A stretch of 63,206 nt of DNA, the filler included, from Ministeria vibrans ATCC 50519 (Eukaryota; Protista; Filasterea), in the NCBI GenBank assembly GCA_943704425.1. It is 4 parts of 4 records of this genome, joined end to end, with 100 filler letters (N's around TTAATTAATTAA, not from the genome) between each part and the next. Parts side by side here need not be neighbours in the genome. Positions count along the whole stretch, not along the records: positions 27,513 to 55,735 come from CALSCP010001513.1; 3 more parts are not named here. The stretch is one strand, 5' to 3'. The notes under the pieces were generated by a model. That model saw nothing but the letters and a program-made list of their open reading frames with translations. It did not search any database and had not been told where the DNA came from. The translations under genes were made by a program, and so were the position numbers. Positions 27,690 through 55,735 of the stretch are shown piece by piece. The first letter of the stretch is position 1. The number at the start of each line of letters is the position of its first letter.

Positions 27690-28876
27690 GACGCACGCAA
27701 TTGCCAAATGCGCTCCATTGGCCCAATGCCCTCCCTATGGCTTCCTTTGCACGCTTGCACCGTCGTCCCTCTTGCCAACCAACCGTGCCCTGTCGGCGCT
27801 GTAACATGCCGCCTCCGCCATTAGGCCCAATTTGTGACCCGAAATGGCACTACAAAAAAAGAAAAAGGAAATGGGCTGACATGTCACTTTGTCGTGTTAG
27901 GATCTGGGTTGGCTCACAGCAGCATGCATGTGCATGTCCAGTCAACACAGCAGCACCGCAGGCGTGCAACTGCTTCGACACACAGCGCCCCAAGCTGGGC
28001 ATTCGCGTGTACGCCCAGCGCGGCAACGTCTACGTCGGTGCCTACGACCGCTCCGGCGGCTTCTTCACGTACAACGCCAATCCGGGGGCGTGGGACGAGA
28101 ACGACTTTAGCACCGTCCAGGCCGAGTTCTTTGGTGGCATGCAAGGCGCCTTTCTCTTTGGCAAGGCGGGCACCACCGTCGCCAGTGGCAGTCCCGGCTA
28201 CTACTCGCAGCCGTCGTCCAAGTGGGTCGGTTCCAACGGACGCATGGCCGGCACCTTTTACGGCTATCCCTACACCGCCGGTACCAACACCATTGGCGCA
28301 CAGCTGTTCAGACCCACAGGCACCGCCAACAACGAGTACCTTGGCTGGAGCGTCGCCACTGGCGACGTTAACGGCGACGGCGAATTTGGTATCAAGCATA
28401 ATTTCAATAGGGCAACGTCTCTTCGTCACTCATACATCTTCTCACCTTTTCCCTTTTGTTTTCTCTTAGATGTGATCAGTGGTGTGCCGCGCCGCACACA
28501 GGAGACGGGTGAAGTGCGCGTGTACTTTGGGACGAGCACAGGCGGCCTTAACAACGTCAACAGCAACATCAAACTGCCCTCCAAGCAGTGGGGAGCCATG
28601 TTCGGCGCGGTTCTCCTTGTCTTAGACATCAACAATGATGGCTACGCGGACGTGCTTGTCTCCGCACCCACTTACGACTCGCTCTCGGCTTGGGAGACAG
28701 GCTCCGTCTTCGTCTACCGTGGCTCCTCGTCGGGTCCCTCCGACGGCGCCCTGTGCACCGCCGTCCCCTGCGCCTCCACCGTCGTCCAACAGCTCACTGG
28801 CTTAAGCAACGGCGAGCGCTTTGGTTACTCTCTTGCCTCTCTCGGCGACTCTGACAAAGACGGTAACTCACTTGTG

Positions 28877-28938
<62 letters not shown>

Positions 28939-30789
28939 ATGCAGCTGAATCATAATTACTACGTCTTAGGATTCAACGATGTTGCCATTGGAGCACCATT
29001 CTACACAAACGGCGACAACGAGTACGCGGGACGCATCTTTCTGTACCAAGGGAGTTCGTCAGGTCTGCAGCTGTCGCAGACGATTGTCGGCGAGGCAGCC
29101 GACTGGCGTCTGGGCTTCTCCATTGCCGGAGGGTTTGACATTGATGGGGATGCGTACAACGACATGGTTGTGGGCCTGCCCAAGCTGCAGCGGGTTGGAG
29201 TGTTCAAGGCCAAGACAATCAGTGAGGTGAGCCTGTCGATCATCACCAACCCAGCGTCGGGTGATGCGTTGCTCGCGAGCATCAACGCCACTGTGTGTGC
29301 CACTATCAATGGCCCTGCGGCCGCCGAGAACTTCCTCCTCGTTCTTACCGTCGACAATCGAATGACCATTCTGGGACAGTCGTCTTCCAACGCCACTCTC
29401 TCCAATGTGGCCGTTGGCGACGTCAGCTGCGTCTTCTTTGATGTCCTTGTCGACACAACGACGGCCAAGGACCCGCCTCTCTCGCTCGTCGCGACCACCA
29501 TCAACCTCACGCCTGGGACACAGGTGGTTACATCGACTTCCGCCGTCAAGGGCGTGCCCCGTTGCAGTGGCGGCGCCTGCGATGTCGACCTGGTGCTCAC
29601 GGGCGAGCCTTTCCCGTCCGAACTCATCGCCGGCAACGACCTCATCCTGCAGGTGAATATCAGTGCGCTCCTGGGTTCGTCCGCCTTTTCACTCACTCTC
29701 ACTCTCACGTGGGTCGACGACCTCTCGCTCGCGGGCAGCATTGCCAATGTCATCTGCCTTGACCACCCGACCTTGAGCGGCGTCGTGTGCGATGTCGGCG
29801 ACTACACTGGCAGCCCCATTGTGTTCAACATGACCCTCACGACTCCTGAACGCTCCGGTTTTGTCAACCCTTTTGCCACCTCGCTTGAGTTTGGCACCTT
29901 TGAGTTGACTACCATCAGCGTCGACACCAACATGACCAACAACTTGTTCCCACTGGCAGTTCCGCTCAACACTGAGTCGGACCTGGACGTGTCAATGCTG
30001 GTGGAGCCCTCGGTGGCGACCATTGGGCCCACAACGCCTATCACTGTGACGTACACGGTGCGCAACCCATCGGCGACCTCTAACAACGTTGTCACCAACA
30101 TTGTCCTGACCTTCAGCTGGCCCGTCGTCTCCGTGCCCATCTACTCAATCGTGGCCACTGCCGACGAAGGCACCGCCGACTGCTCGTCCACCGATGCGTT
30201 CGTCGACGAGAGAGTCGACCCCAACTACGTCCCCGATGAGGCCGAGCCCACCGAAGCCATCACCGATCGCCGTCGTCGTGACGTCTCCTCCAACTCCACT
30301 CTCGACCTCTCGACCTTCCCGGCCCTCAATGAGTCCTTTGCCGGCTGGATGAACCTTGAGTGCACCTTTTCGGCTCTCGAGCGCGGACAAAGCTTTGAAA
30401 TTAAGGTCAAGGCGATCATCAACGAGACACTCGTTACCGAGGACACCGTCATCGAGCTCGAAACTAACGTTACCGCCAACATTGTGCTCAACCCCATCTA
30501 CCAAGACATTAACCTGGGCAACAATCACGACAATGTGACCTTCCTCGCCCGCACTGGCGGCGGCGACAAGAGCACAGTGCAGGGCTCGTCGGTGCCCATC
30601 GAACCCTGGAAGATTGGCGCGTCTGCTGCTGGTGCTGCCTTCATGGTTGCCGCACTTGTTGGCATCCTCTACAAGGCCGGTGCGTTCCGACGCAAGGCCA
30701 AGCCTCCGAATCTGGAGGAGCTCGAGTGCGAGGAGGACGAGCTGCCCCCGACACAGTCGGGTCCTCGCATTGTTGACTCGGACATCTAA
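27690..30789 (+). CDS. Integrin alpha subunit, 5' end probably missing at contig edge
   Basis: FG-GAP repeats with Ca-binding loops (YLGWSVATGDVNGDG, MFGAVLLVLDINNDGYADVLVSAP, RFGYSLASLGDSDKDG|FNDVAIGAP, RLGFSIAGGFDIDGDAYNDMVVGLP); beta-rich leg; RRRR furin-type site; single TM followed by KAGAFRR. The 5' coordinate is approximate. Confidence 0.9.
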
Positions 30790-31017: not shown

Positions 31018-31616
31018 ATGCGACTGCTACTTATCGCATTCGTTGTGTGTGCGTCGACCATCGCGCTCACAGACGCGTGGGGCCAGGTAAGAGAGAGAAA
31101 AACGGAGATGACGTATTGTTTTCTGTCTTGAACCCCATTTCGTCGTTGAACGTCTATGGACGCCTCTCTTGCCTTGTATAATGGGATCGGATGGTGTATG
31201 GTCTCGTTGGCGTGTGTTCACGCGAGTTGTCTTGTTTTAGGATGGGCACTATATCACTGGTTTGGTTGCGCAGTCGAGACTCACGACCAAAGCAGCGTCC
31301 ATGGCCAAGGTGCTGCTTCCCGACGTCCAGGGGCAGCTAGCACAGGTATGGGAGTGTATGTTTAGCCGTGTACGCATCCGTATAGAACCCTCTTCTGGTC
31401 TGTCATGGGTCTATGTTTTTTTTTTTCACTCTTCGCATTTCCATCTCGTGTCGAGTCCATCTGCCTCCAGCTGCCTCACTACCCACTCCCGACACGTCTG
31501 CCAACCCCCCCCGCGCCACTCCGCGCCAGTGTCATCCAGCGCAGTGCAGTCATCGCTTTTGTGCTGTTTCCCCAATTCTCGCTCTGTTTCTGTTTCTTTC
31601 TCCTCTCTCTATCACT

Positions 31617-31715
<99 letters not shown>

Positions 31716-32485
31716 AACCCTCAGCCCTAATTCTTTCTCCTCGCCTGCAGATTGCAAGCTGGGCGGACGACGTGCGCCGTACATCGGAATGGGCGTGGAC
31801 GGCACCCCTGCACTTTGTCAACACGCCCTCGTCCGGCTCCGGCATGTGTACGTACAGCTACAGCCGCGACTGTCAGGACACCTCGGGCACCCCCAACTTT
31901 TGTGTGTGTGGCGCTATCAACAACTGCTCCGACATCCTGTCGGGCTCGTCGCAGACACCGATTCTGTCGCTGCGTGGTTTCCCGGGGCGTCTTGCGACGG
32001 CGGGCGTGAATGAGAGCTTGGCAGATGCACTCAAGTTTCTGGTGCACTTTGTGGGGGATTCACACCAGCCGCTGCACTGCGGGAAGCTGGACGACAAAGG
32101 GGGCAACGATATCACGGTGCATTTCTTTGGGAAGAAGACCAACCTGCACTCGGTGTGGGACACGGCGATCATCGACAAGCGCATGGACGACTCCTTCTCG
32201 GGCTCGCGCGATGCGTATGCGCAACATTTGACGGAACGACTGGGCAAGGACTGGGCCAAGGACATCAGCAAGTGGGAGAAGTGCACCGCCAGCAGTGAGG
32301 TCGTCTGCCCTGACCCCTGGGCGACGGAGAGCGTCCAATACGCGTGCAGCACGGCGTACGCCGGCGCCCCAGACAACGCCAATCTCACGAGCCCCTACTA
32401 CAACAAAGCCTTCCCCGTCGTTGACCTACGTCTGGCCCAGGCCGCCGTGCGCATGGCCGCCGCGCTCAACCGCCTCTGGAAGTGA
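31018..32485 (+). CDS. Secreted S1/P1 nuclease, 3 exons
   Basis: Signal peptide then WGQ|DGH; SWADDVR, LHFVNTP, FLVHFVGDSHQPLH, GGN, NLHSVWD, WATES, LAQAAVRMAAALN. Confidence 0.93.
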
Positions 32486-34444: not shown

Positions 34445-34578
34445 CGAAACAAACGAAGCAAAGTGTGGAAGGAAAAATTAATATTGAAAATAATAAAAAT
34501 TCTTTCGATGAGAAGTTGAGAACTCATGAGATCATTCTTTTTATTTTATTATCACTATATTATACAAGTAACAGAAGT

Positions 34579-36410
34579 CTATTCAGACTGCTCTTCAGAT
34601 GCGGCCACAAGCGACGAAAAGACACTCTTTGGGTCACTGAGCAGTCGCGCAGGAGAGTCAAACTCAACCATTCTACAGAAAACAAACAAACAGTTAACCT
34701 CTCGCTCCCTCTCTCCTTGTGTTGGAATTGGTACTGTCCAGCGTCAAGCACAAGAATTCGATCGCAGTCGATGATGGTCTTGATGCGGTGCGCAATGATG
34801 AGCACAGTGCGCCCGACAAACTCATCGCGCAACACCTTTTGCAGCTGCTCGTCCGTCTTGAGGTCGACACTCGCCGTCGCCTCGTCGAGCAAGAGCACCT
34901 TAGCGTTTCGCAAGAAGGCACGCGCGACACTAAAGAGCTGACGTTGACCGACGCTGAAGTTGGCGCCCCCCTCGGCAATGGTGGCGTTGAGGCCGCCGTC
35001 GAGGGCGCGCACCGCGTCATGCAGCTGCGCGCGCCGCAACGCCTCCCACAGCTCCGTGTCAGATGCACGTCCGTGCGGGTCCAAGTTGAACCGAACGGAG
35101 GCAGCAAAGAGCACGGGGGACTGGGGGATGATGGCGAGACGAGCGCGGAGGGTGCGTAGAGGCACAGAGGCAGTGCTGAGATCGTCGATGAGGATGGTGC
35201 CCTCGTGCGGAAACACCAGTCGCAGCAGTGCCAGAGTCAGCGAGCTCTTGCCGGCCCCCGTGCGCCCACACACCCCGACCCGCTGTCCGGCCTCAATGAC
35301 CACCGAGAGGCGGCGCAGTGCGGGATCGAGTCCATCGCGATAGCGCACCGACACTCCAATGAGCTCAATGCGACCGTGCGCGGGCCACTCGCGCGGCGGC
35401 TCCTTCTGCCGCACAACCCGCCCCTGCGAAGCATGCAACGACGCAGCCGCATTGAGCGCCTCCTCGCTCTCCAGCCGGCTGTAGTGCTCAATGCGCTCGA
35501 CGGCGTTCATGTTCATCTCAGCGTCCGCCACGGCGCGCACCATCCAGTTGAGCGACGAAGTGACAGTCAGCGCGTACGACAGCGACAAACCTGCCAGTCC
35601 CGGGTCAATCCGATGCGCATTGCCCACAATAGACGCCGCTCCAAAGAACACAATGGTTGCGCCGAGGTACTCGAGAAAGCAGCCGAGCCAGCGATTGCAT
35701 GTGTTGAGAAAGAGAAAGTTGATAGAGGATGCGTCAATGTTGGCCGTCATGATCCGCATGAAGCGCTCCTGCACGCCATAAGCACGGATGGTCGCAACGC
35801 CATGGAGCGACTGCGACAACAGCCCAAACACCGGCGACTTAGAGAGACTCTCAAGGCGCTGAAGTTCGCGAGAGGTGGAGCGGAAGAAGCGTTGCATGTA
35901 GAAGTAGACGACGAGAATGGGGGCGGCCGCTGCAAGAAAGATGGGAGTCACAATGCCCTGCACAATCACCGAGGCAATCATTTGAAGAAACATGGACAGC
36001 AGCGACTGGAGGGTGCTGGGCATGCGCGAGTCAACCGTGTTGAGGTCGCCTGAGAAGCGATTGAGAATGCGGCCAATAGGCGTGGCGTCAAAATACTGCA
36101 TGGGCGCAGAGGCTATGCTGTCCACCATGGCAATGTGTAGTTTGCGACTCGCACGCAGGCCCGCATAGATTATCAGACCTGCAGTGAGCAGCGCCACCAG
36201 CATAGATGCTCCACTCAGAATAGCATACCCGGTCAGCCAATACTTGGTGGTGTGCACTGGTGTCTCTTTGCCAGTCTAACAGTTCAAAATTAATACAAAG
36301 AAAACAAAAGAGCGGTTAATAGTATTGTCATTTTTTCTACACAAATTCCGTCTTTCACACACAAATTTTAGTAATAATAATAATAACAATAACAGTAATA
36401 ATAAAAATAA

Positions 36411-36445
<35 letters not shown>

Positions 36446-36455
36446 TAATAATAAT

Positions 36456-36509
<54 letters not shown>

Positions 36510-36632
36510 TAATTATAATAATAATAATAATAATAATAAAAATATATGCGTGCTCGCTCTTCCTTTCTGACTGTCGGTTGTAGTCTCCGTCTCAGACTCA
36601 GATTTCTCGACAGGCACACACATACACATACA

Positions 36633-36718
<86 letters not shown>

Positions 36719-39124
36719 GGTTGTGGAAAAGAGTGGCAGTGCCGTGACCTGGTCCATGACGAGTGATGCGACGGCGTTGGTCACGTTCGGGGTCACATCA
36801 CCACTGCTGGACCATTCGCTGAGCCAATAGTCGGTGTAGACGAGAATGCCACGCGAGGTCATGAAGACAAGGAGAGTGCAGAAACACAGAATGGCTCCAC
36901 ACGCACTCGCATAGCTCATGTAGACACTCCACGCAACTGCGCCCGTCTCGCGCTCCTCCTTGTCAATGAGATCACCATCCTTCTTCTTCGTCGTCCCTCC
37001 CTTGGCATTCGCTATCACATCGACTGCAGATTCGGACACGACCGTCTTTGTCGATATGTTTGAGATTTGGCGCTCTTTCATGGCTGTTGCGCGGGCCACC
37101 TGTAAGCTGGCACTGGCAGTGGCAGTCATTCCACCGCTCGATCCGCCCGCAACATCTTCCTCTTTTACAAGGAGCGCGTTGCTTGCCTCGTTGCCCCCCG
37201 CCACAGCGTCCTGTACTAGCGTCTCGTCCTCGTCAACGACAACAGCCGACACCTGCAGCTCTTCGATCGCGTCACGGACATGCTGCTGATTGGGATGTCC
37301 CTGGGCACGCACTGCACACGCCTCAAGCACCACCACATGGTCGGTCTGGGATGCCAGGTGCAGATAGTGCGTCGAGAGCACCACTGTTTTGTGATGACGG
37401 TGTACCAGCGGTAAGATCACCTCCTGAAACACGTGGCGACCCGTGTGTGCATCAAGCGCCGACAGGGGATCGTCAAAGATGACCATGTCGGCGTACGGTG
37501 CAAAGTACATGGCGCGTCCAATGGAGACGCGTGCCTTCTGACCTCCCGATAGGTTCACACCGCGCTCGCCAATCTCCGTCATGTCTCCAGCGGGAAGCAT
37601 GGCAAAATCCGGCTCGAGGGCACACGCACGCACAACATCGTTGTACCGTTCAACGTCGTACTCGCAACCAAACACAATGTTATCGCGCAGTGTCGCATTC
37701 ATAATAAACGGCTCTTGCGCCGCATACGCAAACACAACCCCATTCACCACGCGATGGCCCGACACCACATTCATTTCGCCAAGAATCGCCGATATTAACG
37801 ACGACTTACCCGAACCCACCGCCCCCACAATCAACGTGAGTTGTCCCTGCGGCACACTCATTGTGATAGAGTGTAGCTGCCCGGCAGTGGTGCTTGTGGA
37901 TGCCATGGTCGGTTGTGTGACCTCTCGCTGGTGGGTGGTACTACTGCTGCTGCTCAAGTGTCCCTCCTTCTCATAACCCTCTTCTTCTTTGTCTTCGTCT
38001 TCCTCCTCCTCATCCTGAGTGTCCCATGCAAGTTGCGCACGCACAAATGACACGGCAACAGGACGCAAGTCACCGGCATCACTGTTCCCACCTGTCGCCA
38101 CAGCGGTTGTTGCACCCAACAGCGAGTGTTCCGACCCATCTCCTCCTTGTGAGTGTTCAAAGTCCCATTCACTCTCGGAGTTGCCACGACGACGCACTGG
38201 GGCACCCGACGAGATGGTAGAGTGACGGAAAAAGCGTTCGTGTTGACGTACAAGGTTGTCTTGTGTGGTGAGTAGCTGGGGTGCGTGCGGGGCAATTTCG
38301 TCGCGTGTGTAGAAGCTACGAAGACGCTTGACGGACACGGTGGCGTCCACCCATGTGTTGAAGATGAGCGGAAGGAAATTGAGGGGCATGCGAAGCATGT
38401 TGAAGAGAGAAATGGAGGTGAACGCACGCTGGGGGGTGAGAGGTTCGTCGGAGACGAAAGCAAACGCGGCAAAGCTCGAGAGGGTAACGAGCACTGGAGT
38501 GGCGGTCATGAGGAAGACAGTAAAGGCACGGACAATACCTGAGCGTACCAGACAGTGAAGCTGGTGGGCTCGTGCGGCACCAAGACGCTCAACAAAGAAG
38601 GTCTCCCACGACATGCACTTGATGACCTTGACATTCTGCAGCAACTCATCCGTCTTCTTCAGGCGATCATCTTCGGCCACGATGATCTTCTTTTGCCAGC
38701 GTGACTGCAGCGTCACCAACCGTGCCTGCACTGGCATAAGCACGACCATCATGGCGAGTCCTGTGAGACCCACTATACCCAGTTGGCCCACAATCAGAGC
38801 AAGTGCAATAGCAATTTGCAGGGGCAGTGCAAAGGTGTAGTTGACAAAGTAGAACCAAAAGAGAATCTTTGAAGTGTCCGTCGACATGTGATTAGCAATT
38901 TGGCCTTGGTTTTAGAAATAGAAAACGTTAAAAAAGCTCATCATAAACATTCTCTCTCTCCCATCATAGATGGAAATGTTCTCTCACCCCTCATAGATGA
39001 AAATATTCTCTCTCATCCATCATAGATGAAAATTCTCTCTCACCCATCATAGACGAAAGTATTCTCCCTCTCTCTATCACTTTGTTTCTTTCTCCCTCCT
39101 CTCTCTCTCTCTCTCTCTCCTCTT

Positions 39125-39170
<46 letters not shown>

Positions 39171-40759
39171 NNNNNNNNNNGCCCGCGCGCGTCTCGTTTG
39201 TATCAAGAGTCTTCGTGACAGGACCGTCTTCGTCGTACCAGCCGTAACTGTCCTCTCTCCCTCTTGTCAGTCAGGAAAAGTGTTGGGTACCGGCAGTGAG
39301 TTCTTGACGTTCCTTGTTGGTCAGTTGGAGGGATTTGTTGAAGATGGCGGTTTGGAGACAGGCGCGTGCGTGAACACCTGCACGCATGACAATCTGGTGG
39401 TGATTCTGCATCAGAGTTGACTAAGACGGGTGGAAGGAAAAGATGAGCATTGCAGGATTGGGACTCGTGAGTGCAATAGATTTCTACTTGAAGACAGTTT
39501 CCGAGGAGAAGAACGCCAATGAGGACAAATCCATTGGCAAAAAAAGCCGAGAGGGTAAGGATGGAGGAAGGAGCGCGCACGGAGGAGGAGTGATGTGGCA
39601 GATGTTGCTGTTGGACAGTGGTGACGTAGGTGACGATGCCATTGAGGCAGATAGGACCCAGGAATGCAAGGAGGTTGCCGGCAAGCATGCAGCCAAGAGC
39701 AATGACCATGGGCTTCCAGAAGCACTGAGCAAGCGCTGTCCAAAGCGAGCGCTTCTTGTGTTCGTGGGGCATGGCTGAGTGTCGCCAACGACGGTCAAAG
39801 TCGGCGTAGAGCGACGCGGCAATGTCGGCGGGCGGCAGACGGCCCAGGTCGGTCTGTTCCAGTGGGGCTCGGTAGCCCTTGCGGATAGTGGGCACCATGA
39901 AGGAGAAGGTGACGTACGAATAGAAGTTGGCACATGCGTCGCGGAAGACGAGGGGTAGCGTACGGGTATCTTCGCCATTTTGGTCTCGTTGGGGTCGGAG
40001 ACCACGACGGGGTGCGGCAAGCAGTGTGACCAGTTCCATGACAATGAGAGAGAAGCAGAGAATTGCAAAGGCAAGGTAGTTCCAAAACCGAATGTCGTCG
40101 TCGTACTTGGGGATGGCAACCACGATGCGGTGGGTCAGGGCGGACGCACCGAGAGACATGGCGAGCCAGGCCGGGAGAAGGGCAATCATGGTCGTGGAGC
40201 GACGCACCAACTCACAGTGGTGGCACGTAACGAGCGAGAAGATGAAAGCAATAAAGAGGACAATGGGGGTGAGGAGTGCGTGGATGGGTGTGGCGCTTGC
40301 GGAACCAAACGAGAGGATGTTGGCGGCGAACATGACGAGCGTAAGCACAAGCAAGAGAAAGACGACAATCCAACGGGCGTTGTGGACGGGCGTGTGCCAG
40401 GAGCGGGCGTAGTCGTCATCGTAGACGGAATACGACGCGGAGGTGTCGCTCGTGGCGAGGAGACGCTCGCTCTCGCCGGGATTGACGCTCAGCGCGCGCG
40501 TCGTGTGTTTCGTGCGTGTTTTGCGTTGCACACAGATGAGCGTAGCGAGAGTCACCACGGCGACGAGCAAGGCCGCCCCATCAAAGAGGACGCTGTCGAC
40601 AAAGCATGGCGTCAGCTGCCGCGTGCCATCGACGACCGTAAGGGGTCCCTAGACGAACCCCAAAAATTAGTGTGATGAACTTGTTTTTTTTTTTTTTTCT
40701 TTTTTTCTCTTTTTTGTTTCCATTCATACAAATCCCTCGGGGCCACAATAGGACGCCAT
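34579..40759 (-). CDS. Long ABCC transporter with TMD0, sulfonylurea receptor (ABCC8/9)-like
   Basis: MASYCGPEGF|GPLTVVDG..PCFVDS; WHTPVHNARWIVVFLLL; LGRLP; FFANGFVL; TAGQIANHMSTDT; NBD1 GAVGSGKSS, TEIGERGVNLSGGQ, FDDPLSALD; DYWLSEWS; NBD2 GRTGAGKSS, FSVGQRQL, LDEATASVD. Confidence 0.88.
38950..39070. repeat. Intronic ~28-bp minisatellite, about 4 copies
   Basis: The unit TTCTCTCTCACCCATCATAGATGAAAAT repeats imperfectly inside an ABCC intron. Confidence 0.8.
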
Positions 40760-41038: not shown

Positions 41039-42709
41039 ATGGAACGTGCGCGAGACATGCTGCGCAGTCCGTCGATGACGCACCCGGGCGCACGCATTGT
41101 GGTCCATCCGGAGGAGGCTGAGGCCAAGGCGTCCAAGCTGTCCCCGCTCAAGAAGCACTGGTTCCTCATTGGAATCTTCGTGGTCATCACCCTGGCCAAT
41201 ATGGCGCCGTACGTGGGCGCGAAAGGTATTTGCGAGCGGTTATCAGTGTCGTGTCAGAGAGAGAGAGAAGCGCTTTGAATGCGCGCTGTTTACGGTTGCT
41301 GCCGGCGCCGACTGGGTTCCCACGCTCCTCTAATTCCGCCCTGGGGTGCATGTAGGAGGCCCGCTTGTCCCGGAAATCACCATCAAGTACATTGCCGTGT
41401 CCTTTATCTTTTTCAACAGTGGTCTCTCACTTCCGTCCGACCAGCTCCACAAAGCCATCTTCAACGTCCGTGCCCATGCCTTCATCCAGCTCTTTACCAT
41501 GGTTGGCATTCCCATCGCCATTCGCTTTCTCGTCTATCTGCTTGGGTAAGACACGAAGCGAAGGACCGACACAGACTGTGTGTGTCGCTGGCACGGCACA
41601 TGCACTGCTCTACACCTCCTCCTCACCTTCTCGCCATCTCTAGCGCAACGTCATTGTTGGACCCGGCGCTTCTCAGCGGGCTTATGGTTCTGGCGTGCAT
41701 GCCTCCGCCAGTCTCGTCGGCCGTCATCGTCACCAAGGCAGCCGGCGGCAACGAGGCCCTTGCCATCTTCAACTCGGCTCTCGGCAGTTTTCTGGGCATT
41801 TTCGCGACTCCCTCGCTGATTCTCTTCTTCCTGGGTAAGGCGCAACACATTTTTTTGACGAAGAGGAGAGAGAGAGAGAGAGAGAGTAAGAGTCTAAGAG
41901 AATTGAGAGAGAGAACGGAGTGAGTGAGTGAGAGAGTATGGGTGCGTCTGACTGTGTTTGTATCTGTTTGTCTGCGTGTGTGTGTGTATGTATGTATGTA
42001 TGTGTCTATGTGTGAGAGGTACTCATAGTTCTTTTTTGAAAGGGACAACTGCGGAAGTGCCCTTTGGGAGCATCATTGGAACGCTGATGATGACTGTGGT
42101 GGTGCCATTGCTGGTGGGGCAGCTGGTGCGAGTGCGGTACTGGACGCGAGTAATTGAGCCGATGGGGATTCCGTTTAGCACGCTGAGTGGCCTCATGCTG
42201 CTGCTCATCATCTACGCTGCCTTCTGCGACACGTTTAGCCACGAATCGTCGCTGCCAGCCACGCAGCTGCTCACGATCGTCTTTATTGATTCCTTTCTTA
42301 TCCTCTCCTTCACTGCCATTGCCTTTGTCATCTCCTTTCGCCTCTTGGCCTTTCCGCGTCCCGATGTTGTTGCCGCCATGTTCTGTTCCTCGCACAAGTC
42401 ACTCACACTCGGTAATAAGCAAACCATCACACAAGCAGCACCGCACGACAAAATGACAACCGTCAAGCAACCCATTATCTCCCTATTACCACCACCCAGA
42501 ACAGCCACTCATACACTCTTATCCGTTTCCTAGGCATGCCTATCCTGTCCATCATCTACTCGGGCCGTCCCGAGCTTTCCTTGCTCTCCATCCCTCTTCT
42601 CATGTACCATCCTCTCCAGATCCTCATCCATGGCATCATGGTTCCCTTTGTCCGTCCTTTCCTTGCTGCTTCGCCTCTTCTTCCCCTCACCACTGTATCC
42701 CCTGTATAA
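41039..42709 (+). CDS. SLC10A7: Sodium/bile acid cotransporter 7-like (SLC10A7/RCH1), multi-exon
   Basis: [11 protein letters not shown]|[73 protein letters not shown]|[15 protein letters not shown]. Start could be 41039, 41057 or 41075. Confidence 0.92.
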
Positions 42710-42762: not shown

Positions 42763-45758
42763 TCACTTCATTTCACTCTTGGCGCGTTTCTTCAACTTGG
42801 CAACCAACCTCTGCACTTCTGCCTCTCCTTCTCCCTCTCCTTCTCCCTCTCTCTTTCGCTTTTCCTTCCTCCCCTCACTCCCTCCTCCCTCTCTGCGCTT
42901 CCGTCGCTCTCCCATCACCTTCTCCATATTCTTCGTCTTCTTAAACTCCGCTGAAGTCGGATCCAGCGCAAACTCGCTCGATGAGAACAGCGCTGAAAAC
43001 CGCTCGTCCTTCAAATCCACCTCAAACCCATCTTCGCCCTTTTCCTCCTCCGCCGACTCCTTTCCCTTCTTGTTCTTCTTCTTCTTGTTCTTCTTCTCCT
43101 TGTTCATAATGTCCTTCAAGTCAAAATGTGCCTTGTTCCCCTCCGCTCCCTCTTCCATCATCAGCAGTTCCAGTCCCTCTCGCTCCTTCCGCTCCTCCTC
43201 CGTCTCCTCCTTCGCCTCCTCGCCCTTTGTCTTCTTACTCTTCTTCTTCTTTTTCTTGTCCTTTTCACTCGTACTCTGCTCCATCCTTCGCATATTCTTC
43301 AGTTCCTCTGCAAAATACGGATCATTGGCGAACCGTTCATCGTCACTCTCCTCCTCCTCGCTACTACTCCCCTGCTCTTTCTCCTTCTTCTTTCCCCGCT
43401 TCTTCTCCCTCCGCTTCTTCTGCACCTTCTCCCACACACTCAACTCCTTGTCCTTCTCACGCTCTTCCTTCCGTTTCACTGCATCGCTCACTTTCTCGCG
43501 CAGCGCCGGTGTAAAAGTGATCTCCATATCTCCCTCTTCTTCTTCTTCTTCTCCATTTCCCCACTCTCTTTGCTGCTTCTTGTTTTGCTTTTCAAGTTCC
43601 TACACACAGAGAGCAACTGAGACAACAACAAACAACAGCGGCAAAAACTAAGCAACAATCTACCTTGGCGTGTTGAAGCAAATCCTTCATTGCGGCAGTG
43701 CGTCTCTCACGCGCACTCAGGCCGACTCCTTCCTCCTCCTCTGCACTGTCCGACGACGACGAAAGGTACTCTTGCAGGTCTGCATTTAGCATATCATCCT
43801 ATTAAAAGAGTTTGAGAGAAAGAGATGTTGAAAGAGAGTTCGAGAGTGTATGAGAGAGTTTGAGAGGATGAGTGAGAAAGTTTGAGGGAGAGAGAGTTTG
43901 AGGGTGTGTGAAAGAGTTTGAGGGTTTGAGATACATAAGTATATATAGAGGGAGAGATTTTCACTCATCAATGATGAGTGGCACACACACTCACACTCTT
44001 GTTTCGTTTATCCCTCTTTCAAACGAACCTTTGAGAAGTGTCGAGTGAGCTTCTCGAGGCGCTCGCGTTCAGCCGGTTCACCTTCATCCCACGTAATGGC
44101 GACTCTGCTTTGCTGAAGGCTCTTCGTGTAAAACGAGTGGGGAGTGTAGCCCGACGGAACAGAAGTGCAACTCTCGCGGGGGGTCTGATCAAACTCAGTG
44201 TCCTATGTGAACAATTCCATTGTAATTAATTGATTCAGCGTGTGTGTGCGTGTATGTGTGTGATACGTTAGGAATGAAGCGCAGGTCGAATTCATTTGAG
44301 GACGTTTCGAATTCAAGACCATCGCATGCGGAGTAGAGTGACTGTGCAGTGGCCACTGTGTCGCACTCGACGACAGCGTAGAAGTACCGCATGCGACGCA
44401 CCTGCGCACAGACGCGTTAGTAGTGCACCACAGTGTGACATGAACAAATAGTGCAGAGTGGGTGAATTGGCGAGTGCAAAAAATGAGTGCATAGAATCAA
44501 ACTACGACTCTCTCTCTCTGTGACTTCGTGTGTCTCTGACCTGATACCGGCGCATCACCAAATCCTCCACTTCCTTCTCATTGCTTTTGTCCTCCTTTAC
44601 TTCCGGAATCGGCAGTCCCTCATCTTCACTAAAATTATTATACACAAAACAATTTTAAAAACTTCGCCTTTTTCTTTCTCTCCTTCGAAACCTGTCACTG
44701 CCCATCATTGGACCAATTTCCTGCTCCTTGGCCATGCACCTCTGTCCATAGTCAGACGGGTAAATTGTCACCTTTCGAATCACTCCCTGTCGCAAAAAAA
44801 AAAGAAGAATCAAAACAACGATTTCCTTTCTCCATTGCGCTTTTACCTGATCAGATTTAAACGATGAGAAGATGGCAAACAGATCCACTGCTCGCACTGA
44901 ATCCCAGTCAAGATTGCACACTGCCAATCGTGACGTCGCTTCTTCTGTCAACTCAACCCTACCACAGAATAGTACACCCAATTAGCAAAACAGAATTGAG
45001 ACTCTGTCTCATCGACTGACTTTTCTCCGTGCGCGTAAGCCCACACTTCATCGTAGAGCTGCGGATCAATCTCGGGCGCATCGTCGTCGGCGCCATCGTC
45101 GTCGTCGTCGGAAGAGTCTTCGTCGCTGTCGTCTTCGTCCGATGAAGAGACAAGTCCTTCGCCACGCGCATAGTCAGGCGCTTCGTCGTCCTTCTCTGCA
45201 TCATCGTCATCCTCATCGTCATCCTCATCCTCATCATCATCGTCGTCGTCCTCCCCCTCCTCATCGGCAGTCTTCTGCGTGCCTTTGGACTTTGCTTTGG
45301 GCACTTCGTCGTCATCTTCGAGACTGTACAATAAATGTGCATGTGTCAAAAGTTCACTCGTGTTGTCGTTCTCTCTTCGCTCGTGCTCCCACTTACGCGT
45401 AGTAGCGCTGCAAGTCGTCTTGAGTGTGGCTGCTACGCACCTTCTTCCCGCGTTTGTCCACAGAGGCTACGCAAAACGCACCAAGCCGAAAAACGTGTGA
45501 GGAACACACGCGAAAAACGAAAAAGTCCATGTGGCACGACAGCGGCCTGCTTGATCGCATCCAATCTCTTACACTGCGACACAAAATCCTTGTCCTTGAA
45601 CATTCCCTCAAAGCGCTTGTCGATTTTCACTTTGTGTTGTTGTCGGCGCGGTTGCTACAGAGCGGAGTGCCGGGTCAGTTTAGCATTCGCCCCACACTGC
45701 GCCAAAGACTCACTTTGAAACGCGCATCCCGCGCAACATTGAACCGATCGTCAGGCAT
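42763..45758 (-). CDS. ESF1: Pre-rRNA processing protein ESF1, multi-exon
   Basis: [81 protein letters not shown]153-type [18 protein letters not shown]. Confidence 0.93.
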
Positions 45759-47406: not shown

Positions 47407-48137
47407 TGCACGCTGAGTGATGAGAATTTCTGATGTTCTGAAGTTTCTGAATGATCCATTGGGATGGTAAGGCGCTGTGAGGACTGATGCGAAGGACGGA
47501 CCTTTTTTGATCGCTGAATAAAATCGACCTAAGTAAGGGAGAAAGAGTCGCAATGGCTCTGCTCACAGCGGGTTCCCTCAAGGCCTTTATGAACGGACGT
47601 ATCGTACAATGTGCATTCCAGGCTACGATCCGTTGTGCCAAAGTTCGTTCTCTACATCTCTTTTACTCTCTGGCAGTTTTTTGAGGGTTGTCCACTCAGA
47701 ATTATTGAGGGTTGATTTTGAAATTAATTTTGATCACTATTCATTTTTCGCCCAGACACAGTGACACTCTTTTCTCTCTTCCTCTTCCTCTATTTGCTGG
47801 GCACGCCCCACTTTCCTTTCGTGCACCCCCTCCCCCCTGGTGTCCACTCTCCCTCGACTGCTTCTGAGAGACTCTTTAAGCGACTTTCGTCTTTTTTTCG
47901 TCTCGTCACTCTCTTGGACACCATGTACGCAACTGCGATCGCTCTGCGTGATCGCCTGCTTCCACATGGAGCGAAACCGACTACTCTTCAACCGTCTTCC
48001 GGCAAGCCTCCTTCAAAATTTACGAAATGTCGAATGGGACTGGACGATTTTTCCGAAGAAAAAAAAAAAGCAAAACGAAACAAATTTGCAATTTGCGTTT
48101 GCCAACAAGGACTTTAGCCATCTGCCGGCTTGCATCA

Positions 48138-51100
48138 ATGGCCCAAGTGCCTGATACGTGGTGGGTCTGCGCTTGTCGTGCGTCTAGGGCGTGGGGGTTT
48201 GGCATTTGACACTCTTTGCTTTGATCTCTCTTTTCCACTCACTGCTGTCGTCCCTCTCACGCGTCCCCTCGCCCTCTCACTCCCGCCAACGCCACCATGC
48301 GCATCCTTCACACCCTTCTCTTTACCCCTACTCCCTTTCGACTCACTTTTTTCTTCTTTTTTTTTCCCGTCTTTGTTTTTCTTCAAAGGGCCCCTCACAT
48401 TAATCTCGCTATGTACGACCTACTGTCCCGCCTTGTTAGCGCATCGGTTGCCTTGTTCAACGAGTGGCACCCCGTACGTCACCAGGGAGAGAGGGAGAAG
48501 GAGAGAGAGAGAGAAGGAGAAGGAGAGATGAAGAGCAGAATGAGAGATCAATAATAACAGAGGCTCTCTCTCTTTTTTTCCCTTTCTTCGCTTTTGTTTC
48601 TGGGGATGACTCGATCGCCCCCTAACCCCCCCCACGGCAACAATACGCTCGTGCCATTTGCCACCTTTGGCTTTCTCTTTTTTGTTTTTCTTGTGCCTGT
48701 CACTTATGTCATACCCCAAACATGTAATTGTAGTAGTATAATTATATAGGCTCACAAGATTTTTTTGGTTTGATTCTCTTCCTACTGTACTCTAATATGA
48801 TTTCTGTTGCTCATCTTGTTTTTTTTTTTTGTTACAGATCCAAGAGGTCTCTCATGAAGGCGACGTGTATCACATACACATTATGCTCTGCCAGCCTCGA
48901 GAGGGAGAGAGCCTCAACGAACTGGAAGGTCGTCTGCAGGGCATTCTTGTGGACCTGCAGGAAAACTGGACGAACCCTCAACAGTTCATGCCAGAGGCAA
49001 AAGCCATCTACGACCGCTTTGTCCAGGCGGCCAGCAAGCAAGGCTACGCGCGCGATGGACGACCAGAGTTTCTCAAGGGTGAGTACGAGGGTGAACTGAA
49101 GTTCAAGCTCGAGTGTGCGGGTGGCGTGAGGCGACAAGCAAAGCAAGACAACCTCACCTTCCCGCCACCGCGCTGCCATATCAAACTCCTCGGACGTCCT
49201 CAGAAAGACAGCATTGTAAGTAGAAATGAGCATTCATTGAAAACACACCCAATTTTAAAATCAATTTGAATCTTGTGTTTNNNNNNNNCCTTCAGGGTCA
49301 AGAAGGCCAAGGAGAAAACTCGCGGCTTGACCAAGACTGCGGCGGCCCAGGCGTCGCAGAGTGAGGACAATATGTTTTGCAAAGAAAGGGGGATGAAACG
49401 GCTGGATGCGGAGCCTCAGCAGAGAGAGTGCGATCAGGAAGAGTGGGAGAGGAGTAGCCAACTGAAGCTTCAGGAGTTTGGCGTCGATCCTAACATGTTG
49501 GGTGAAAATCCATTCATCATTCCACCACAGCAGCCGCAGCCGCAACCGCAACCACCACAACCACAGCCGCCGCAGCCGCAACCGCAACCACCACAACCAC
49601 AGCCGCATTCAGACACCAATTTACCACTAGTGGGTGGTTCGGTCAATAGCGTCAGTCCGTTGACTGTTGGCCAACCCGACTTCGACGCATCGTTCTTGGC
49701 CAACGAGGACGTTGAGCTGTGCTTTCCTGACCTAGCCATTTACGCCACACTCAACCAGGAGGGCACTTCAGACACCAGCGATATCGTCACAAAACTTCTT
49801 AATGCCTTGGACTCTCCTCCGGTAAAAAGATATAATTTTATTATATTTTTATATCATGATTTTGTTATTATTACCAAGCAAATTCACACCTCTCTCTCTA
49901 TCACTTTGTTTCTTTCACTCTATCACTTTGTTTCTTTCACTCTACCACTTTTTTTTCTTTCTCTCCCTTCTCTGGTGTGTGCGTGTGTGTGTGCCTTACC
50001 TTTTTGTTTCTCTTCCACATTCGTTTTGTTCAGGTTGATATGGAAGACATTGCGTCCACCTCAAGTGCCATGTTGTTTGCAGGCTCACCCTGCAGCATGG
50101 CGTCGTCGTCATCCTCCTCGTCGTCGCTTCAGTCCTCTTCCCCGTCTTCATCGTCGTCCGGGTTGCCTTCTGCCTCGTCGTCTGGCATTGCGGTAAATGT
50201 GAGCAATAATGATCCCTTTTTTGTTTTGATTTTTTTTCTTTTTTTTTTTGTAGCTACCTGTTGATGCAAGGGCAACGGCTATCTCGGTCGAGATTTCTGA
50301 AATAGATTTTTGTGATATTATAGCGACCATCGCGGAGGGCTTGGCAAGCCCCCGGGTTGCACCCGAGTCGCCGGACGACCGACGCTCACGCAGTCTAGAG
50401 CCGGTGCGCCCTCTCGTTCCCTCTGGTGGTGGACCCTCTCCTCCTCCGCCTGGCGCTGGCTCTGCATCGGCATTTGGCGCTGCATCTGCATTTACATCTG
50501 GCCCTGCACCTACATCCTCGTCAGGCAGTGTTGCTGGAACTGGCAGTGGCAGTGGCAGTGATGGTGCAACGGACAGTGGCAGTATGGACGTGGACGACCG
50601 TGGCAGTGACGACCAAGGTGGCAGCATGGACGTGGACGAAGGTGGCAGTGTAGACGATGACAATGTTGCGGACAGTACCAAAACACCCGACGGTCGCCCA
50701 CAAGCCATGGGTGCCAGTCAATCTTTACATGCCAGGTTCCAGCCCATGGGCGCTGCAATGGGCACCTCGAGTTCTCGCTGTACGTCATTCGTCCACAAGA
50801 CGGCATACTCATGCTCACACACACGCACACACTCTCTCTCTCCCTCTCTCTTTCTTGTTCTAGCCCCTCACATGAATTTCGCGGACAAACACAAACACGA
50901 TCAGGTCACACGAGTTTCCCACTCTGGTAAAAATTTCACACAAACTACCCAAGCATTCGACTAATCAACTGGGTTTTTTCTTCATTTTTTCATAGAGTCC
51001 GTTCCGCTTTTGGGCGACCTAATGGCACAGCGAGGATGCAGCGGTACAACAGCACACTCTCATCTATCATAGCCCCTGTTGTCTTTTCCGCTCACTTCCA

Positions 51101-51676
51101 TCTTTCTTAGACCTTGTACGGCGCGAAAACTCAGCACCGGCTGGTTCCCAACAGTCACTTGACCATTCCCAACAGGTTTCAACCAGACTCATTCCGACCC
51201 CATCTCACTCTCTCGTTCAACTTCTTTTCTAGACTGTGTACTTGTGTGGACGGCACGTCGTTGGGGACTTGTCCGCCTCTGAGATGATGCATAACCTTAC
51301 GCACCTCGCGAATAACTCGGCAACTGAGGAGAAGAAACTGAGCACCCTCGTCACTGCCAATGCCTACCTTGCCCGTCTCCAAGTCCTCGCCGACTTGCCT
51401 GACTTTGCCCGTCTCCTCTACCGTCTTCTTGTCATCATTAACGCTGGCCGTCTCACCTTTACCAATTCCGCCCCGGTGATGGTGCGCAACGGCACCTTGT
51501 CACTCATCGCTGACAACGGAGTGTTCATCACCATTGCTCCTCACGTACGTATCACCCTCTCTGTCTCCACTCTATTCTTATTCTGTACTCTTCCTTAGTC
51601 TGACTCGACGCTACAATTCTTCATCTCGCGTTTGTCCAAGGAGGTTCTGACAACACTGAAAAACGCCCAAAAATAA
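48138..51676 (+). CDS. Gene A: novel domain X, then Q/P-, Ser- and Asp-rich low-complexity region, then novel domain Y
   Basis: Phase-consistent exons 48138-48157, 48389-48473, 48838-49215; further exons across an 8-N gap near 49281 (junction phase unresolved); last exon EVLTTLKNAQK* ends at 51676. Middle exons are approximate. Confidence 0.7.
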
Positions 51677-51812
51677 AGAAGAAAGAATGGGCGTGTAGTG
51701 CGCCTTCGGTGCAGAGCCTGGGATCTACTCGAATTTTATCATACCCTATATATCAAACAATAAAAAGGCCAAACAATAGAAAATAAATAGAGAATCAAGA
51801 GCTGTACTCAGA

Positions 51813-54800
51813 ATGAATGACGATAATGAGGTCATTCATTCTACTCAATGCAAATAGTTGACATAGTATTATTTTTCGACGAACAACAAGTAAGAAAAGA
51901 TACAACGCATGTATGACAAGAACCTCCATCCAAGTTCATCTCCACTTTCTTTTACGCTGTAGCCAACCGCTCTTTCCAAGATCCTCCATCACAGCAACAA
52001 CACCAACACGTGTTTTCAAAGTTGCGTGAGGCGGTGGGTCGGGGAGGAAGTTAGTTGAATTTTCAACGAATTCATTCACGATCACACTACCCTCAAATTT
52101 TCACTTTCACACACTTTTCTCCAACAAAAACGGCACATTTTCTCTCTTTTATTGTCGAGAAACGTTCTTATTACTGGTACGACTGAGTAGCGACTCAACA
52201 CGAACAGCGCCGCTCGACACTCCTTGCAAAAGGTTCGTCTCGTGTTGTTCCGTATCCCTTCTCTAGTCATCGCTCTAAAGTTCAACAGCAAAGACTCGCA
52301 CGCTGCATTGCGCCGTATCGTTGCCCACGTGGATGCCTCTAAGTTCTCACGGACAAAGACAGACTGTTTAGTTTGCGCCGGTTGCACAGTGGAACACCCT
52401 CAAACATTTAACACAGCGAAGTTCCAGCGAAGTCTTTCAATGTGCGCCCATAGGCACTTCCCCACGCCACTCGCTCCCCTCGTGATTCCCCTCCGCACCG
52501 TCCATTGTCCATTGACAGTTTTGACACACCATGCGCCCCTCCACACACGTCTTTCTTCTTCTGCTTTCGCTCTCTTTCTCTCACAATCATGAGCTGTTTT
52601 ATTCATTTTTTTGAGGGTTAATAAGAAAAATGGCCGTTCCATTTCGTCCTTTATTGCTGTTAACTGTGATTTCTCAAGTGTGCAGCTGTGTGATTCTCAC
52701 GGGGTCTTTTTGACGCAAGATATTGAGACGGCTAAGAAATTGAGGGTGGGGACTGTTTTTTTTGCTGCTTTGCTGCGGAACAATAAACAATTTATTCTGG
52801 AGCTCTTCCCCAGTTTGACACTCCACTAAACTGTAAAGCTTGTATAGCGACGGCTGGTGCGTGTTGTGTGTGGGATGTCGAGTTTTGTTATTTTTATTAT
52901 TCTCGCTTATAATTTTTTTTCCGTCTTCGTTTTTTTTTAAAATACACTAAAAATCTCGTCCGCTTGCTCCGTAGACGTCCACAAAAGATATGATGCAACA
53001 ACAAGTACTGTTTGTGATTGGAACGGACGTGTTGGGGCCGTTCCACTTGGCGGCTGCCTTGGAAGGCACAGCGAGACGAATGGCGTCTGTCTTTCAGTTC
53101 TTGGACTATCATGTGACCGTACTTGCGGAACATCCCATTGGTGCAAGTGTCAATCAGGCGACGCTAGCGCCGACTCATGTCAACATCCAAAACACTGTTC
53201 GCTCACTGTCTTCTTCCACTTCTCTCGTTGTGTACTTTCTTGGGCACGGCGCGTGGGACAGCAACGGCAATGCTGGCCTGGAAACAGCAGACGCTCACCC
53301 GGATCGCCCAAACAAGGCCACCAAGAGCAAGCCCACAACTTATTCCAATCTGTACACGCAATGTGACCTCCTGAGAGACCTTGGCGATCGCTTTCAGCAT
53401 GTTTTCCAAATCAGCGACCTCTGCTACTTTTCGGTGCCACTCGACAAGACAATCTTCTCACTCGACCCCAGCTCCTGCGGCAACTTTATTGCGCTTAACA
53501 ACGACACTAACACAGCGCGGTACCTTCGCAGCCAAGGCGGCTCCTTCCACGTGCTTACCACATTCGCACTCTCCCCCGACACATACCTGCTTGATGGCGA
53601 CGGCAACACGCTTCTCTCACACGCTCTGCACAACCTCCTTGCCGAGAACCTCACCGGCAATTTACCACCGACTCCGCCAGCCTTCCTTGTTGACAGCGTT
53701 TCCGTCGAGTGCATTTCCATCCAACGATTGGCACAGCTAATCCACGATGAAATTCATCGGCTTTGTGCTGGCCGTATTGGTGTGCAATTTGGGCGGGCGC
53801 CATGGCCTGGAAAGGAGAACACGGGCGAATTTGTTTTTTTCAATCCACTGGGCGCCATTGCTGACTGGCTGGCGTCTGGTCATGACGGGAGCAGCAGTAG
53901 GAATAGTGTCGAGACGTCGCGCTCTCCCGTCATGCTGATTATTTTGGCAGCGAATGAGGACCCGCACCGGGTAGAACGGATTGCCGAGACGCTTGGACTG
54001 GGTAGTGTGTGCCGGCACGTTGTACTCGGCCAAGAGGGTGAGGTGCTATCGCTGTACGAAGGCGACAATGCTCTTGTCGTTTTAGCTGAGCTGGGATGCG
54101 TCGACAACGAAACGTGGGCTGAGCGCGTTGCGCGGTGTGTCTCATCGCACGTCACTACTTACGCGGTTGTGCTTGCCCCCATGGCCGAAGCGAGCTTCCC
54201 TCGGATGATGCGAGATGTCTACATTGCCAGCGGTTACCAGTCTTCGAATGGCATGTCTCTCTGCTCGCCCTTTCAAGAGGAGCAGCTGGCGGCACTGTCG
54301 AAATTCATTGCGGAGATGAAGCTGTCGAGATTAAAAATTGGAGTGGTCCAAGAGGCTCAGGGCATCGGAAAGGCTCTCGCGTGCCCGCACCTCCTGGCCT
54401 CCCTGTTGCCTCTGTGGAATACATCGTCGACTGTTGTTGCGTCTCTCTACACCATCCCCATTGGCATGGCGATTTGTGTCGGGGGTGACCAGTTGATCGA
54501 GGAGGACGCCTTCTTACCAGCGGCACTTGTCATCGTCAGGGCGCTTCTGGCCAACCCGGCATTGCGTACACTTGCGCCACCGCTGCTCGTAGAAGTGTCG
54601 CTGGTGCTCGATGCACCGTTGGTAGACCTCAATGTGATTCTCCAAGCAGCAGTCGATGCTTCGTGTCGTGTTCGCTATGCGTTGGGTCCCACGTTGCGCT
54701 GCATCACCTATGAGAACGAAAGGGCGGTGGTCAAACTCTCCTGTGACGCAGTGGGCGTGTGGGCTCTCAACGCACACCTCTCTTGCTCTAACCGGACCTT

Positions 54801-55577
54801 TGCCGGACTGTCTGTCATAGAGTTGCGCATTATCAAGTGTTCGCCGCTTGATATTATACGAAAACCACCAAAACTCGTCGACTCACAAACCATGTAAAAA
54901 ACGAAAATAATTATTATGATAATAATTAATGATGATGAGTGATGGATGATGCGTGATTTTATTCTAACTCTATGATTTTTTTTTTTTTTTACTTTTGCAG
55001 TGGCGGTCATGATCATTCACCGGCTGGATTTCACGAGGAGATTATTCGCATTGTGTCGACGACAGAAGCGGTTGATGTGTGGACACACGTACAAAAAACA
55101 AACAAACAAACTGTGTGATCATGTTGTGCGCTGATCAACGTTGCGTTGTTGTTGTTGTTGTTGTACATTTTTATGTAGGAGGGACCCATACCAATTGGGG
55201 AGCCCATTGGATCGGAACTACTTGATGTACATATTCTGCTTGTTCATCCGCGTGGCGATGAGACGTGTGAGATGGTGCGAGACCGACTTGTATCGCAGAT
55301 AAACGAGCTCAAGACGCACTGGAAGGAGCCGCCGTCGGAAGGAGCCAAGATGCTCAAGAAACATATCAATCGGACGCGCGAGATGCATGGCTACACGAGC
55401 GATGGGAAGCCAGCGTCGGGCCAGAGTGTGAACGGTGAACTGCGACTCAAGTTGGACTGCAGTGGTGGTGGCACGGCACGCACTGTTGTCGGGCCTGACA
55501 ACCAGAAGCTCATTTATCCGCCGCCGAGAGGTCATTTGGCAGTGCGAATGCGATCGGACGGAGTCGTAAGAAGATGA
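51813..55577 (+). CDS. Gene B: domain Y, caspase-family (peptidase C14) protease, TIR-like domain, possible TRADD-N-like domain, domain X
   Basis: Exons ~52191-52232, 52281-52365, 52417-52441, 52679-52745, 52975-54893, 55001-55088, 55179-55577 splice in frame. Catalytic motifs VVYFLGHG and SDLCY; terminal QFGR...GEFVF. The start codon (51813) is a guess. Confidence 0.75.
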
Positions 55578-55635
55578 AAATATTTAACAATACTAATAAT
55601 TTAGTAATAATAATAGAAAAATTAATTAAAATAAT

Positions 55636-55735
<100 letters not shown>

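Follow-up and report, generated by a model that had tools for sequence, protein, structure and literature searches.

In bacteria, adjacent genes may each encode a copy of one effector-associated domain (EAD), and one of the copies is then part of a fusion with a caspase or a different effector (Kaur et al., PMC7159879). Neighbouring EAD copies are each other's closest relatives, and these domains are predicted to act by homotypic contacts, by analogy with death-fold domains and caspases (PMC7159879). In addition, a preprint describes prokaryotic linked protease-effector modules that are activated by site-specific cleavage (bioRxiv 10.1101/2025.11.14.688446). Here we describe two neighbouring genes of a unicellular eukaryote, the filasterean Ministeria vibrans ATCC 50519 (GenBank assembly GCA_943704425.1), that each carry one copy of a domain called X. 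We refer to the genes as A and B, and to the whole stretch of 63,206 nucleotides that was analysed as the window. The window joins four parts of four records end to end with filler letters between them. Both genes lie on the plus strand of the part at positions 27513-55735 (CALSCP010001513.1), and all coordinates below count along the window.

The case for X rests on its core exons, A2 (48838-49215, 126 amino acids) and B2 (55179-55565, 129 amino acids). These share 31% identity over 113 amino acids (BLASTP, E = 1e-16), and their Smith-Waterman score of 146 compares with 27.8 +/- 4.9 for shuffled sequences (z = 24). Thus, A2 and B2 are confirmed as homologous, and X is a genuine, duplicated domain. 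A first-pass annotation of this DNA had claimed that such a sequence occurs twice, and both peptides are indeed found at the places it gave. Within the piece 27513-55735 there are only two copies (tblastn, E = 3e-12 and 6e-13). X is also the sole region common to the two genes, with no similarity between A and B outside it, and no internal repeat was found within the domain.

Pairwise alignment of A2 and B2 yields 39 invariant positions, grouped in the motifs HI.L..PR..E, W..P, GY..DG.P, GEL..KL.C.GG and DN..L.[FY]PPPR.H. Polar or charged residues account for 17 of these positions. Among them are a single Cys, two His residues located in strands, and a number of Arg, Lys, Asp and Glu residues. 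Only C93, H14 and H114 are Cys or His residues that are invariant between the copies. The domain as a whole is charge-neutral (17-18 Lys plus Arg versus 17-19 Asp plus Glu).

Each core exon is preceded by a short one, A1 (48389-48473) in gene A and B1 (55001-55088) in gene B. BLAST detected no similarity between these two short exons, and a local alignment in the register proposed by the first-pass annotation scores 23 (shuffle p = 0.04). Their assignment to X is therefore weakly supported by sequence and suggested mainly by their position.

The two copies have three intron positions and phases in common (2, 0 and 0). A phase-2 acceptor precedes the short exon in both genes (48389 and 55001), and a phase-0 donor follows two codons past a conserved Trp residue in both (GT at 48474 and 55089). 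Both features had been noticed at the outset from the DNA alone, and the acceptors at 48389 and 48838 in gene A are now backed by RNA. The third position, also of phase 0, comes after a D-x-x tripeptide, and the sites are homologous: D-S-I followed by GTAAGT (49216) in gene A and D-G-V followed by GTAAGA (55566) in gene B. Three intron positions held in common, together with their phases, indicate duplication at the DNA level rather than retroposition or convergence. X was thus copied at the DNA level between adjacent, co-oriented genes. The earlier proposal that a module was moved by exon shuffling goes further than the data. The known borders of X are unequal in phase (2 on the 5' side and 0 on the 3' side of the second exon), and the true 3' border lies within missing sequence, so classical exon shuffling is not shown.

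Splice sites were derived from RNA-like contigs with GT..AG joints, which were mapped to positions 47700-53600 from four runs. These contigs confirm that gene A is expressed and spliced, and they reveal that X is larger than the assembly suggests. The contigs begin exactly at 48838 and depart from the genome at 49216. In three runs they carry at least 62 nucleotides after 49215 and at least 64 nucleotides before 49290, both of which are missing in the assembly. These hidden parts are in frame with A2 and with the following exon A3, and the 62-nucleotide part opens with a hydrophobic, strand-like peptide. Such extra in-frame transcript sequence means that the assembly gap (N at 49281-49288, within the stretch 49216-49289 that begins as intron and is bounded by loose transcript ends) hides exonic sequence, and that X runs past 49215. 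The domain therefore spans at least about 155 residues: a short helix exon, a core exon of 126-129 amino acids and a continuation in the following exon. The region 48389-49215, which had been given as the extent of X, does not contain the whole of the domain. An annotation of gene A made from the assembly alone is wrong at 49216-49290.

One nucleotide difference was also seen within the core exon. At position 48918, run X18, which carries a different organism label, has G for C, changing Asn27 of A2 to Lys; this is the sole difference in about 300 nucleotides. It probably reflects variation between strains, and the residue affected is not a conserved one in X.

All searches for relatives of X, and all structure models, were made exon by exon, with queries that left out the letters hidden by the gap. 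Every X query was accordingly a partial domain that lacked both the helix at the N-terminus and the continuation at the C-terminus, and only two rows went into the alignment. When each exon of A and B was scanned against Pfam 2025, NCBIfam and PADLOC, nothing matched for X. The only library line was Tox-REase-5, which at E = 0.12 falls far short of its cut-off. Exon A2 had no match in a word-indexed search of 5.8 billion clusters, within the length limits of that search, and its best score in the ESM Atlas was 0.80, with no named family. Comparison of X with PDB sequences returned only chance-level lines for the ribosomal proteins L44e and L22. No relative of X was found in two scans of metagenome contigs, in viral contigs or in prokaryotic genome contigs, and a HMMER profile built from A2 and B2 revealed none among 1.84 billion representatives. 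The sole HMMER match, P0001, was rejected as spurious. It is a translated tandem repeat that hits one 18-residue stretch 18 times.

These results support X as a new sequence family, within the limits of database coverage, and the earlier expectation that it would match no named family has held up against Pfam, NCBIfam, PADLOC, PDB sequences and the 1.84 billion representatives. As far as these sequence searches reach, X has no detectable relative outside the source genome and is a lineage-restricted orphan domain. The protein libraries lack the annotated proteome of the source organism itself, which makes a result of no homologue weaker for close relatives. This absence is deduced from an integrin exon in the same piece, whose only 100% identical match is a fragment carried by a JGI metagenome contig of 2.1 kb, all other matches being to distant animal integrins.

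With such partial queries, X might belong to an already named family that lies beyond the reach of exon-wise searches. The domain was incomplete in every search and model, its alignment had two rows, the models reached a confidence of only 63-64, and the proteome of the organism and probably those of its relatives are absent from the protein libraries. Even so, a core of 126-129 amino acids in which 39 positions are invariant would normally suffice to give a profile match, and none was obtained. We therefore consider membership in a known family to be unlikely.

AlphaFold2 models were built from the two-row alignment for the same partial sequences. The A2 model (m250cf0e52b3c) has a predicted local distance difference test score (pLDDT) of 62.7 and a predicted template modelling score (pTM) of 0.55, and the B2 model has corresponding values of 64.3 and 0.54. 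The order of elements is alike in both: a strand, two long helices of 15-17 residues, a strand, a loop or hairpin and a final strand. As modelled, X is a globular alpha+beta domain. Foldseek searches of the PDB and BFVD with both models gave nothing with E < 0.1, and VIA-align comparison with 48,161 chains gave nothing above noise for either. The top VIA-align values are within chance by the calibration of the tool, in which unmatched models typically reach Z values of 7-8, and the root-mean-square deviations were 4-8 Å. Moreover, the A2 and B2 models lead to different families.

These families bear on the main rival explanation, namely that X acts autonomously in ligand binding, RNA binding or catalysis and performs the same job separately in A and B. 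One example would be a highly divergent module resembling 2H phosphoesterases or the ribosomal protein uL22, with a role in sensing or binding a nucleotide or RNA and with the adjacency of the genes being a trace of tandem duplication. Many of the conserved polar residues fall at loops and strand ends (GY..DG.P, GEL..KL.C.GG and PPPR.H), as might be expected of such a domain. The uL22 lead comes from the B2 model, in which a strand, helices, another strand, a beta-hairpin and a last strand follow one another as they do in uL22. Chains of uL22 rank at the top of two independent fold searches with this model, within chance level. However, X has no match to PF00237, and the sole L22 line among PDB sequences has an E value of 0.25 and a register unlike that of the structural alignment.

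The 2H lead comes from the other model. Like 2H phosphoesterases such as LigT, Usb1, the central domain of AKAP18, ASCC1 and coronavirus ns2, X has two His motifs about 100 residues apart in predicted strands, each of the form His-hydrophobic-x-hydrophobic. The second motif has a Pro residue before it and basic residues after it, as in 2H phosphoesterases, and seven of the top 50 matches to the A2 model are 2H structures, with values within chance level. Against this, the motifs of X read HIML and HIKL in A and HILL and HLAV in B. The Thr or Ser residue that 2H enzymes carry at the third position (HxT/S) is thus absent from both motifs of both copies, and X has neither an internal duplication of the 2H type nor a sequence match to any 2H family. 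The order of helices and strands in LigT is also not colinear with that of X. X is not basic, and the structural matches for both families remain under the chance level of the tool. We treat the uL22-like topology, and the pair of strands with His residues that recalls 2H enzymes, as no more than leads, and we view an autonomous function for X as possible and somewhat doubtful.

The transcripts also define how X is placed in protein A. In one alternative 5' exon, the 3' part of which is seen at 47896-47924, the joint 47924>48389 (GT..AG, runs X7 and X9) links a terminal AT to the G at 48389 and thereby builds a start codon. No in-frame ATG occurs in the frame upstream. The intron that splits this start codon shares its phase-2 position with the one that precedes X in gene B. 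Another isoform uses a first coding exon at 48138-48160 that begins with the ATG at 48138 and supplies seven codons plus two nucleotides (joint 48159/60>48388/9, GT..AG, run X17). With either first exon, X stands at the extreme N-terminus of A, beginning with the helix-like part encoded by A1, which lies between the phase-2 and phase-0 introns noted above.

Downstream of the core, the assembled part of A3 (49290-49821, placed by contigs and frame) encodes a basic patch that resembles a nuclear localization signal (NLS), a Q/P repeat and an acidic-hydrophobic stretch. The later exons at 50034-50192, 50254-50779, 50864-50926 and 50996-51043, and the last ones at 51111-51175, 51233-51544 and 51599-51676 (ending in the stop codon), were placed from joints and contig arithmetic, and the frame is open through all exons. 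From 50034 to 51676, the exons encode Ser-rich and acidic (Asp-rich) tracts followed by a C-terminal region of about 130 amino acids. This C-terminal region (51233-51676) looks globular, with alternating hydrophobic helices and strands, and has no Pfam match, so that protein A includes a second unassigned region besides X. The transcripts of gene A end near 51800.

In the stretch 49867-50063, an intron of gene A contains a short duplicated unit of about 43 nucleotides near 49890-49935. In the RNA-like runs, the word depth of this unit is 30-300 times that of its flanks (12,460 versus about 350). The unit resembles a repeat that is dispersed, or highly expressed, elsewhere in the genome.

The basic patch and Q/P tract had been noted downstream of X, and both are present. 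To judge by composition alone, with the NLS-like patch and the Q/P, Ser-rich and acidic tracts, A may be a transcription factor. The first-pass annotation also found X itself faintly reminiscent of DNA-binding domains of the WRKY-GCM1/FAR1 type, a reading that would make A a sequence-specific transcription factor. Beyond the composition of A downstream of X, we find nothing that favors this idea. No WRKY, GCM or FAR1 profile matched X (A2 and B2 at E <= 1, short exons at E <= 10), and no WRKY, GCM or FAR1 structure appeared among the fold-search matches, including those from Foldseek with the predicted structures. C93, H14 and H114, as the only invariant Cys and His residues, do not make up the four-ligand C-C...H-H/C zinc site. 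Both low-confidence models contain two helices of 15-17 residues where a four-stranded all-beta fold would be expected, the net charge is neutral, and the second copy of X resides in a protease-like protein. A WRKY-GCM1/FAR1-like identity for X is consequently most improbable.

Gene B is the immediate neighbour of gene A on the same strand, with its first exon lying just past 52030. The 5' untranslated exon ends at 52232 and is spliced to a large coding exon at 52975-54893 (joint 52232>52975 in RNA contigs) with its ATG at 52990. The AT at 54892-54893 joins the T at 55001, which keeps the long open reading frame of gene B in frame into B1. This exon is the counterpart of A1 by virtue of its phase-2 acceptor and its phase-0 donor two codons past the Trp residue, and it is followed by a 90-nucleotide intron and by B2. 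The first-pass annotation had placed the X copy of gene B at 55001-55577. Both exons are present there, with B1 ending at 55088 rather than 55091 and B2 likely ending at the GTAAGA donor after 55565 rather than at a stop codon at 55577.

Transcript contigs of gene B reach 2401-2404 nucleotides past 53600, about 630 nucleotides beyond what the exons to 55565 supply, and assembly through a terminal (AAT)n run is hardly possible. This surplus, together with the obstacle posed by the repeat, indicates that gene B very probably splices at 55566 and extends beyond the end of the piece at 55735. The long (AAT)n microsatellite at 55590-55735 forms the end of the piece and most likely lies within an intron of gene B. 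It probably caused the contig break.

The N-terminus of protein B carries the motifs YFLGHG (H86-G87) and SDLCYFS (C145), 59 residues apart. The order and spacing of these His-Gly and Asp-x-Cys elements fit the caspase superfamily (Peptidase C14, clan CD). In the ESM Atlas, 28 of 30 matches to this region are Peptidase_C14, with a score of 0.96. In contrast, the scores against curated models fall under every threshold: residues 29-108 match the NCBIfam model caspase_w_EACC1 with E = 0.0015 and 18.1 bits versus a cut-off of 140, and no Pfam model, including PF00656, matches gene B. Based on its sequence features, the region comprising the first 270 or so residues is a probable caspase-superfamily protease-like domain. 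About 365 residues (53800-54893) separate this domain from X. They show a strand-helix-strand pattern that is Rossmann- or TIR-like in appearance, followed by a beta-rich part, and they have no library match. The 635-amino-acid exon of gene B had no homologue among protein clusters and none among PDB sequences, and the long open reading frame was absent from the record in an exact-sequence look-up.

Because one domain is present both in a protease-like protein and in the protein of the adjacent gene, is terminal in at least one of them and repeats the pattern of bacterial EADs, we tentatively favor, well short of conviction, a role for X as a coupling or recognition module between protease-like B and its neighbour A, which would serve as a partner or substrate. 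In such a mechanism, the X domain of B would bind its counterpart in A, or the two would enter a shared assembly, and this contact would bring the two proteins together. Protein A might then be processed by B through cleavage, and its NLS-like basic patch would be consistent with a nuclear role. A more elaborate version, in which X is a new homotypic adaptor fold that would link a latent regulator with an NLS to a caspase-like protease, with cleavage then releasing or activating the regulator, seems to us decidedly unlikely.

Several observations argue against assigning a coupling role to X. The precedents are prokaryotic or are all-alpha death folds, and X is larger and of alpha+beta type. 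The share of polar or charged residues among the invariant positions (17/39) would fit a ligand-binding or catalytic site as well. In addition, paralogous domains in adjacent genes may reflect mere local duplication with no functional link. The caspase assignment of B lies far below curated cut-offs (18 versus 140 bits, and no Pfam match), and the C-terminus of B, as well as part of X in A, falls outside the sequence seen.

The piece 27513-55735 is nuclear DNA with a G+C content of about 50%, and the eukaryote that it comes from has introns in its genes. Sequencing runs labelled as seawater or algae metagenomes contain DNA of this organism, which we take to be marine. Pfam matches identify an integrin alpha chain gene (27701-30789, plus strand), an S1/P1 nuclease (about 31750-32485, or 31262-32485 in a wider delimitation, plus strand), an ABCC-type ABC transporter with (GA)n- and (AT)-rich introns (34560-40570, minus strand), an SBF-like transporter (41279-42533, plus strand) and a NUC153-domain protein (42763-43527, minus strand). 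The integrin alpha chain has FG-GAP repeats, Ig-like domain 3 and a transmembrane segment, and its tail, which reads GAFRRK, is GFFKR-like. With this gene, the organism belongs to the small number of unicellular lineages that have integrins.

X is real and new as a family, and its significance is modest. Lineage-restricted orphan domains are common in poorly sampled protists, and for this reason we rate the present significance as moderate; the function of X is still a guess. Regardless of function, the locus offers a clean case of domain spread between neighbours with intron positions intact, and in one isoform of A the phase-2 intron inherited in this way has come to interrupt the start codon. 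If X does couple the two proteins, it would be an independently invented adaptor that joins a caspase-superfamily protease to a partner in a protist, and it would bear on how often the logic of a protease plus a shared adaptor has arisen in apoptosis and immunity signalling. If tethering and cleavage both apply, the locus would encode two signalling partners gated by a protease, in a unicellular eukaryote that has integrins, reproducing death-fold/caspase and Relish/Dredd-type logic from unrelated parts.

Among known systems, EADs and the animal death-fold adaptors (CARD, DD, DED and PYD) offer the closest comparison. X shows no sequence or fold kinship with these families in Pfam, NCBIfam, PADLOC or the structure matches. 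It is also longer (at least 155 amino acids), has an alpha+beta fold as modelled and is found in a eukaryote with spliced genes, and its homotypic binding is only predicted. The likeness is instead one of arrangement. As with EADs and death-fold adaptors, a single small domain is found in a pair of proteins, and one of the two appears to belong to the caspase superfamily. As with bacterial EADs in particular, the copies reside in adjacent genes, with A and B being co-oriented and B being the putative caspase-like member of the pair.

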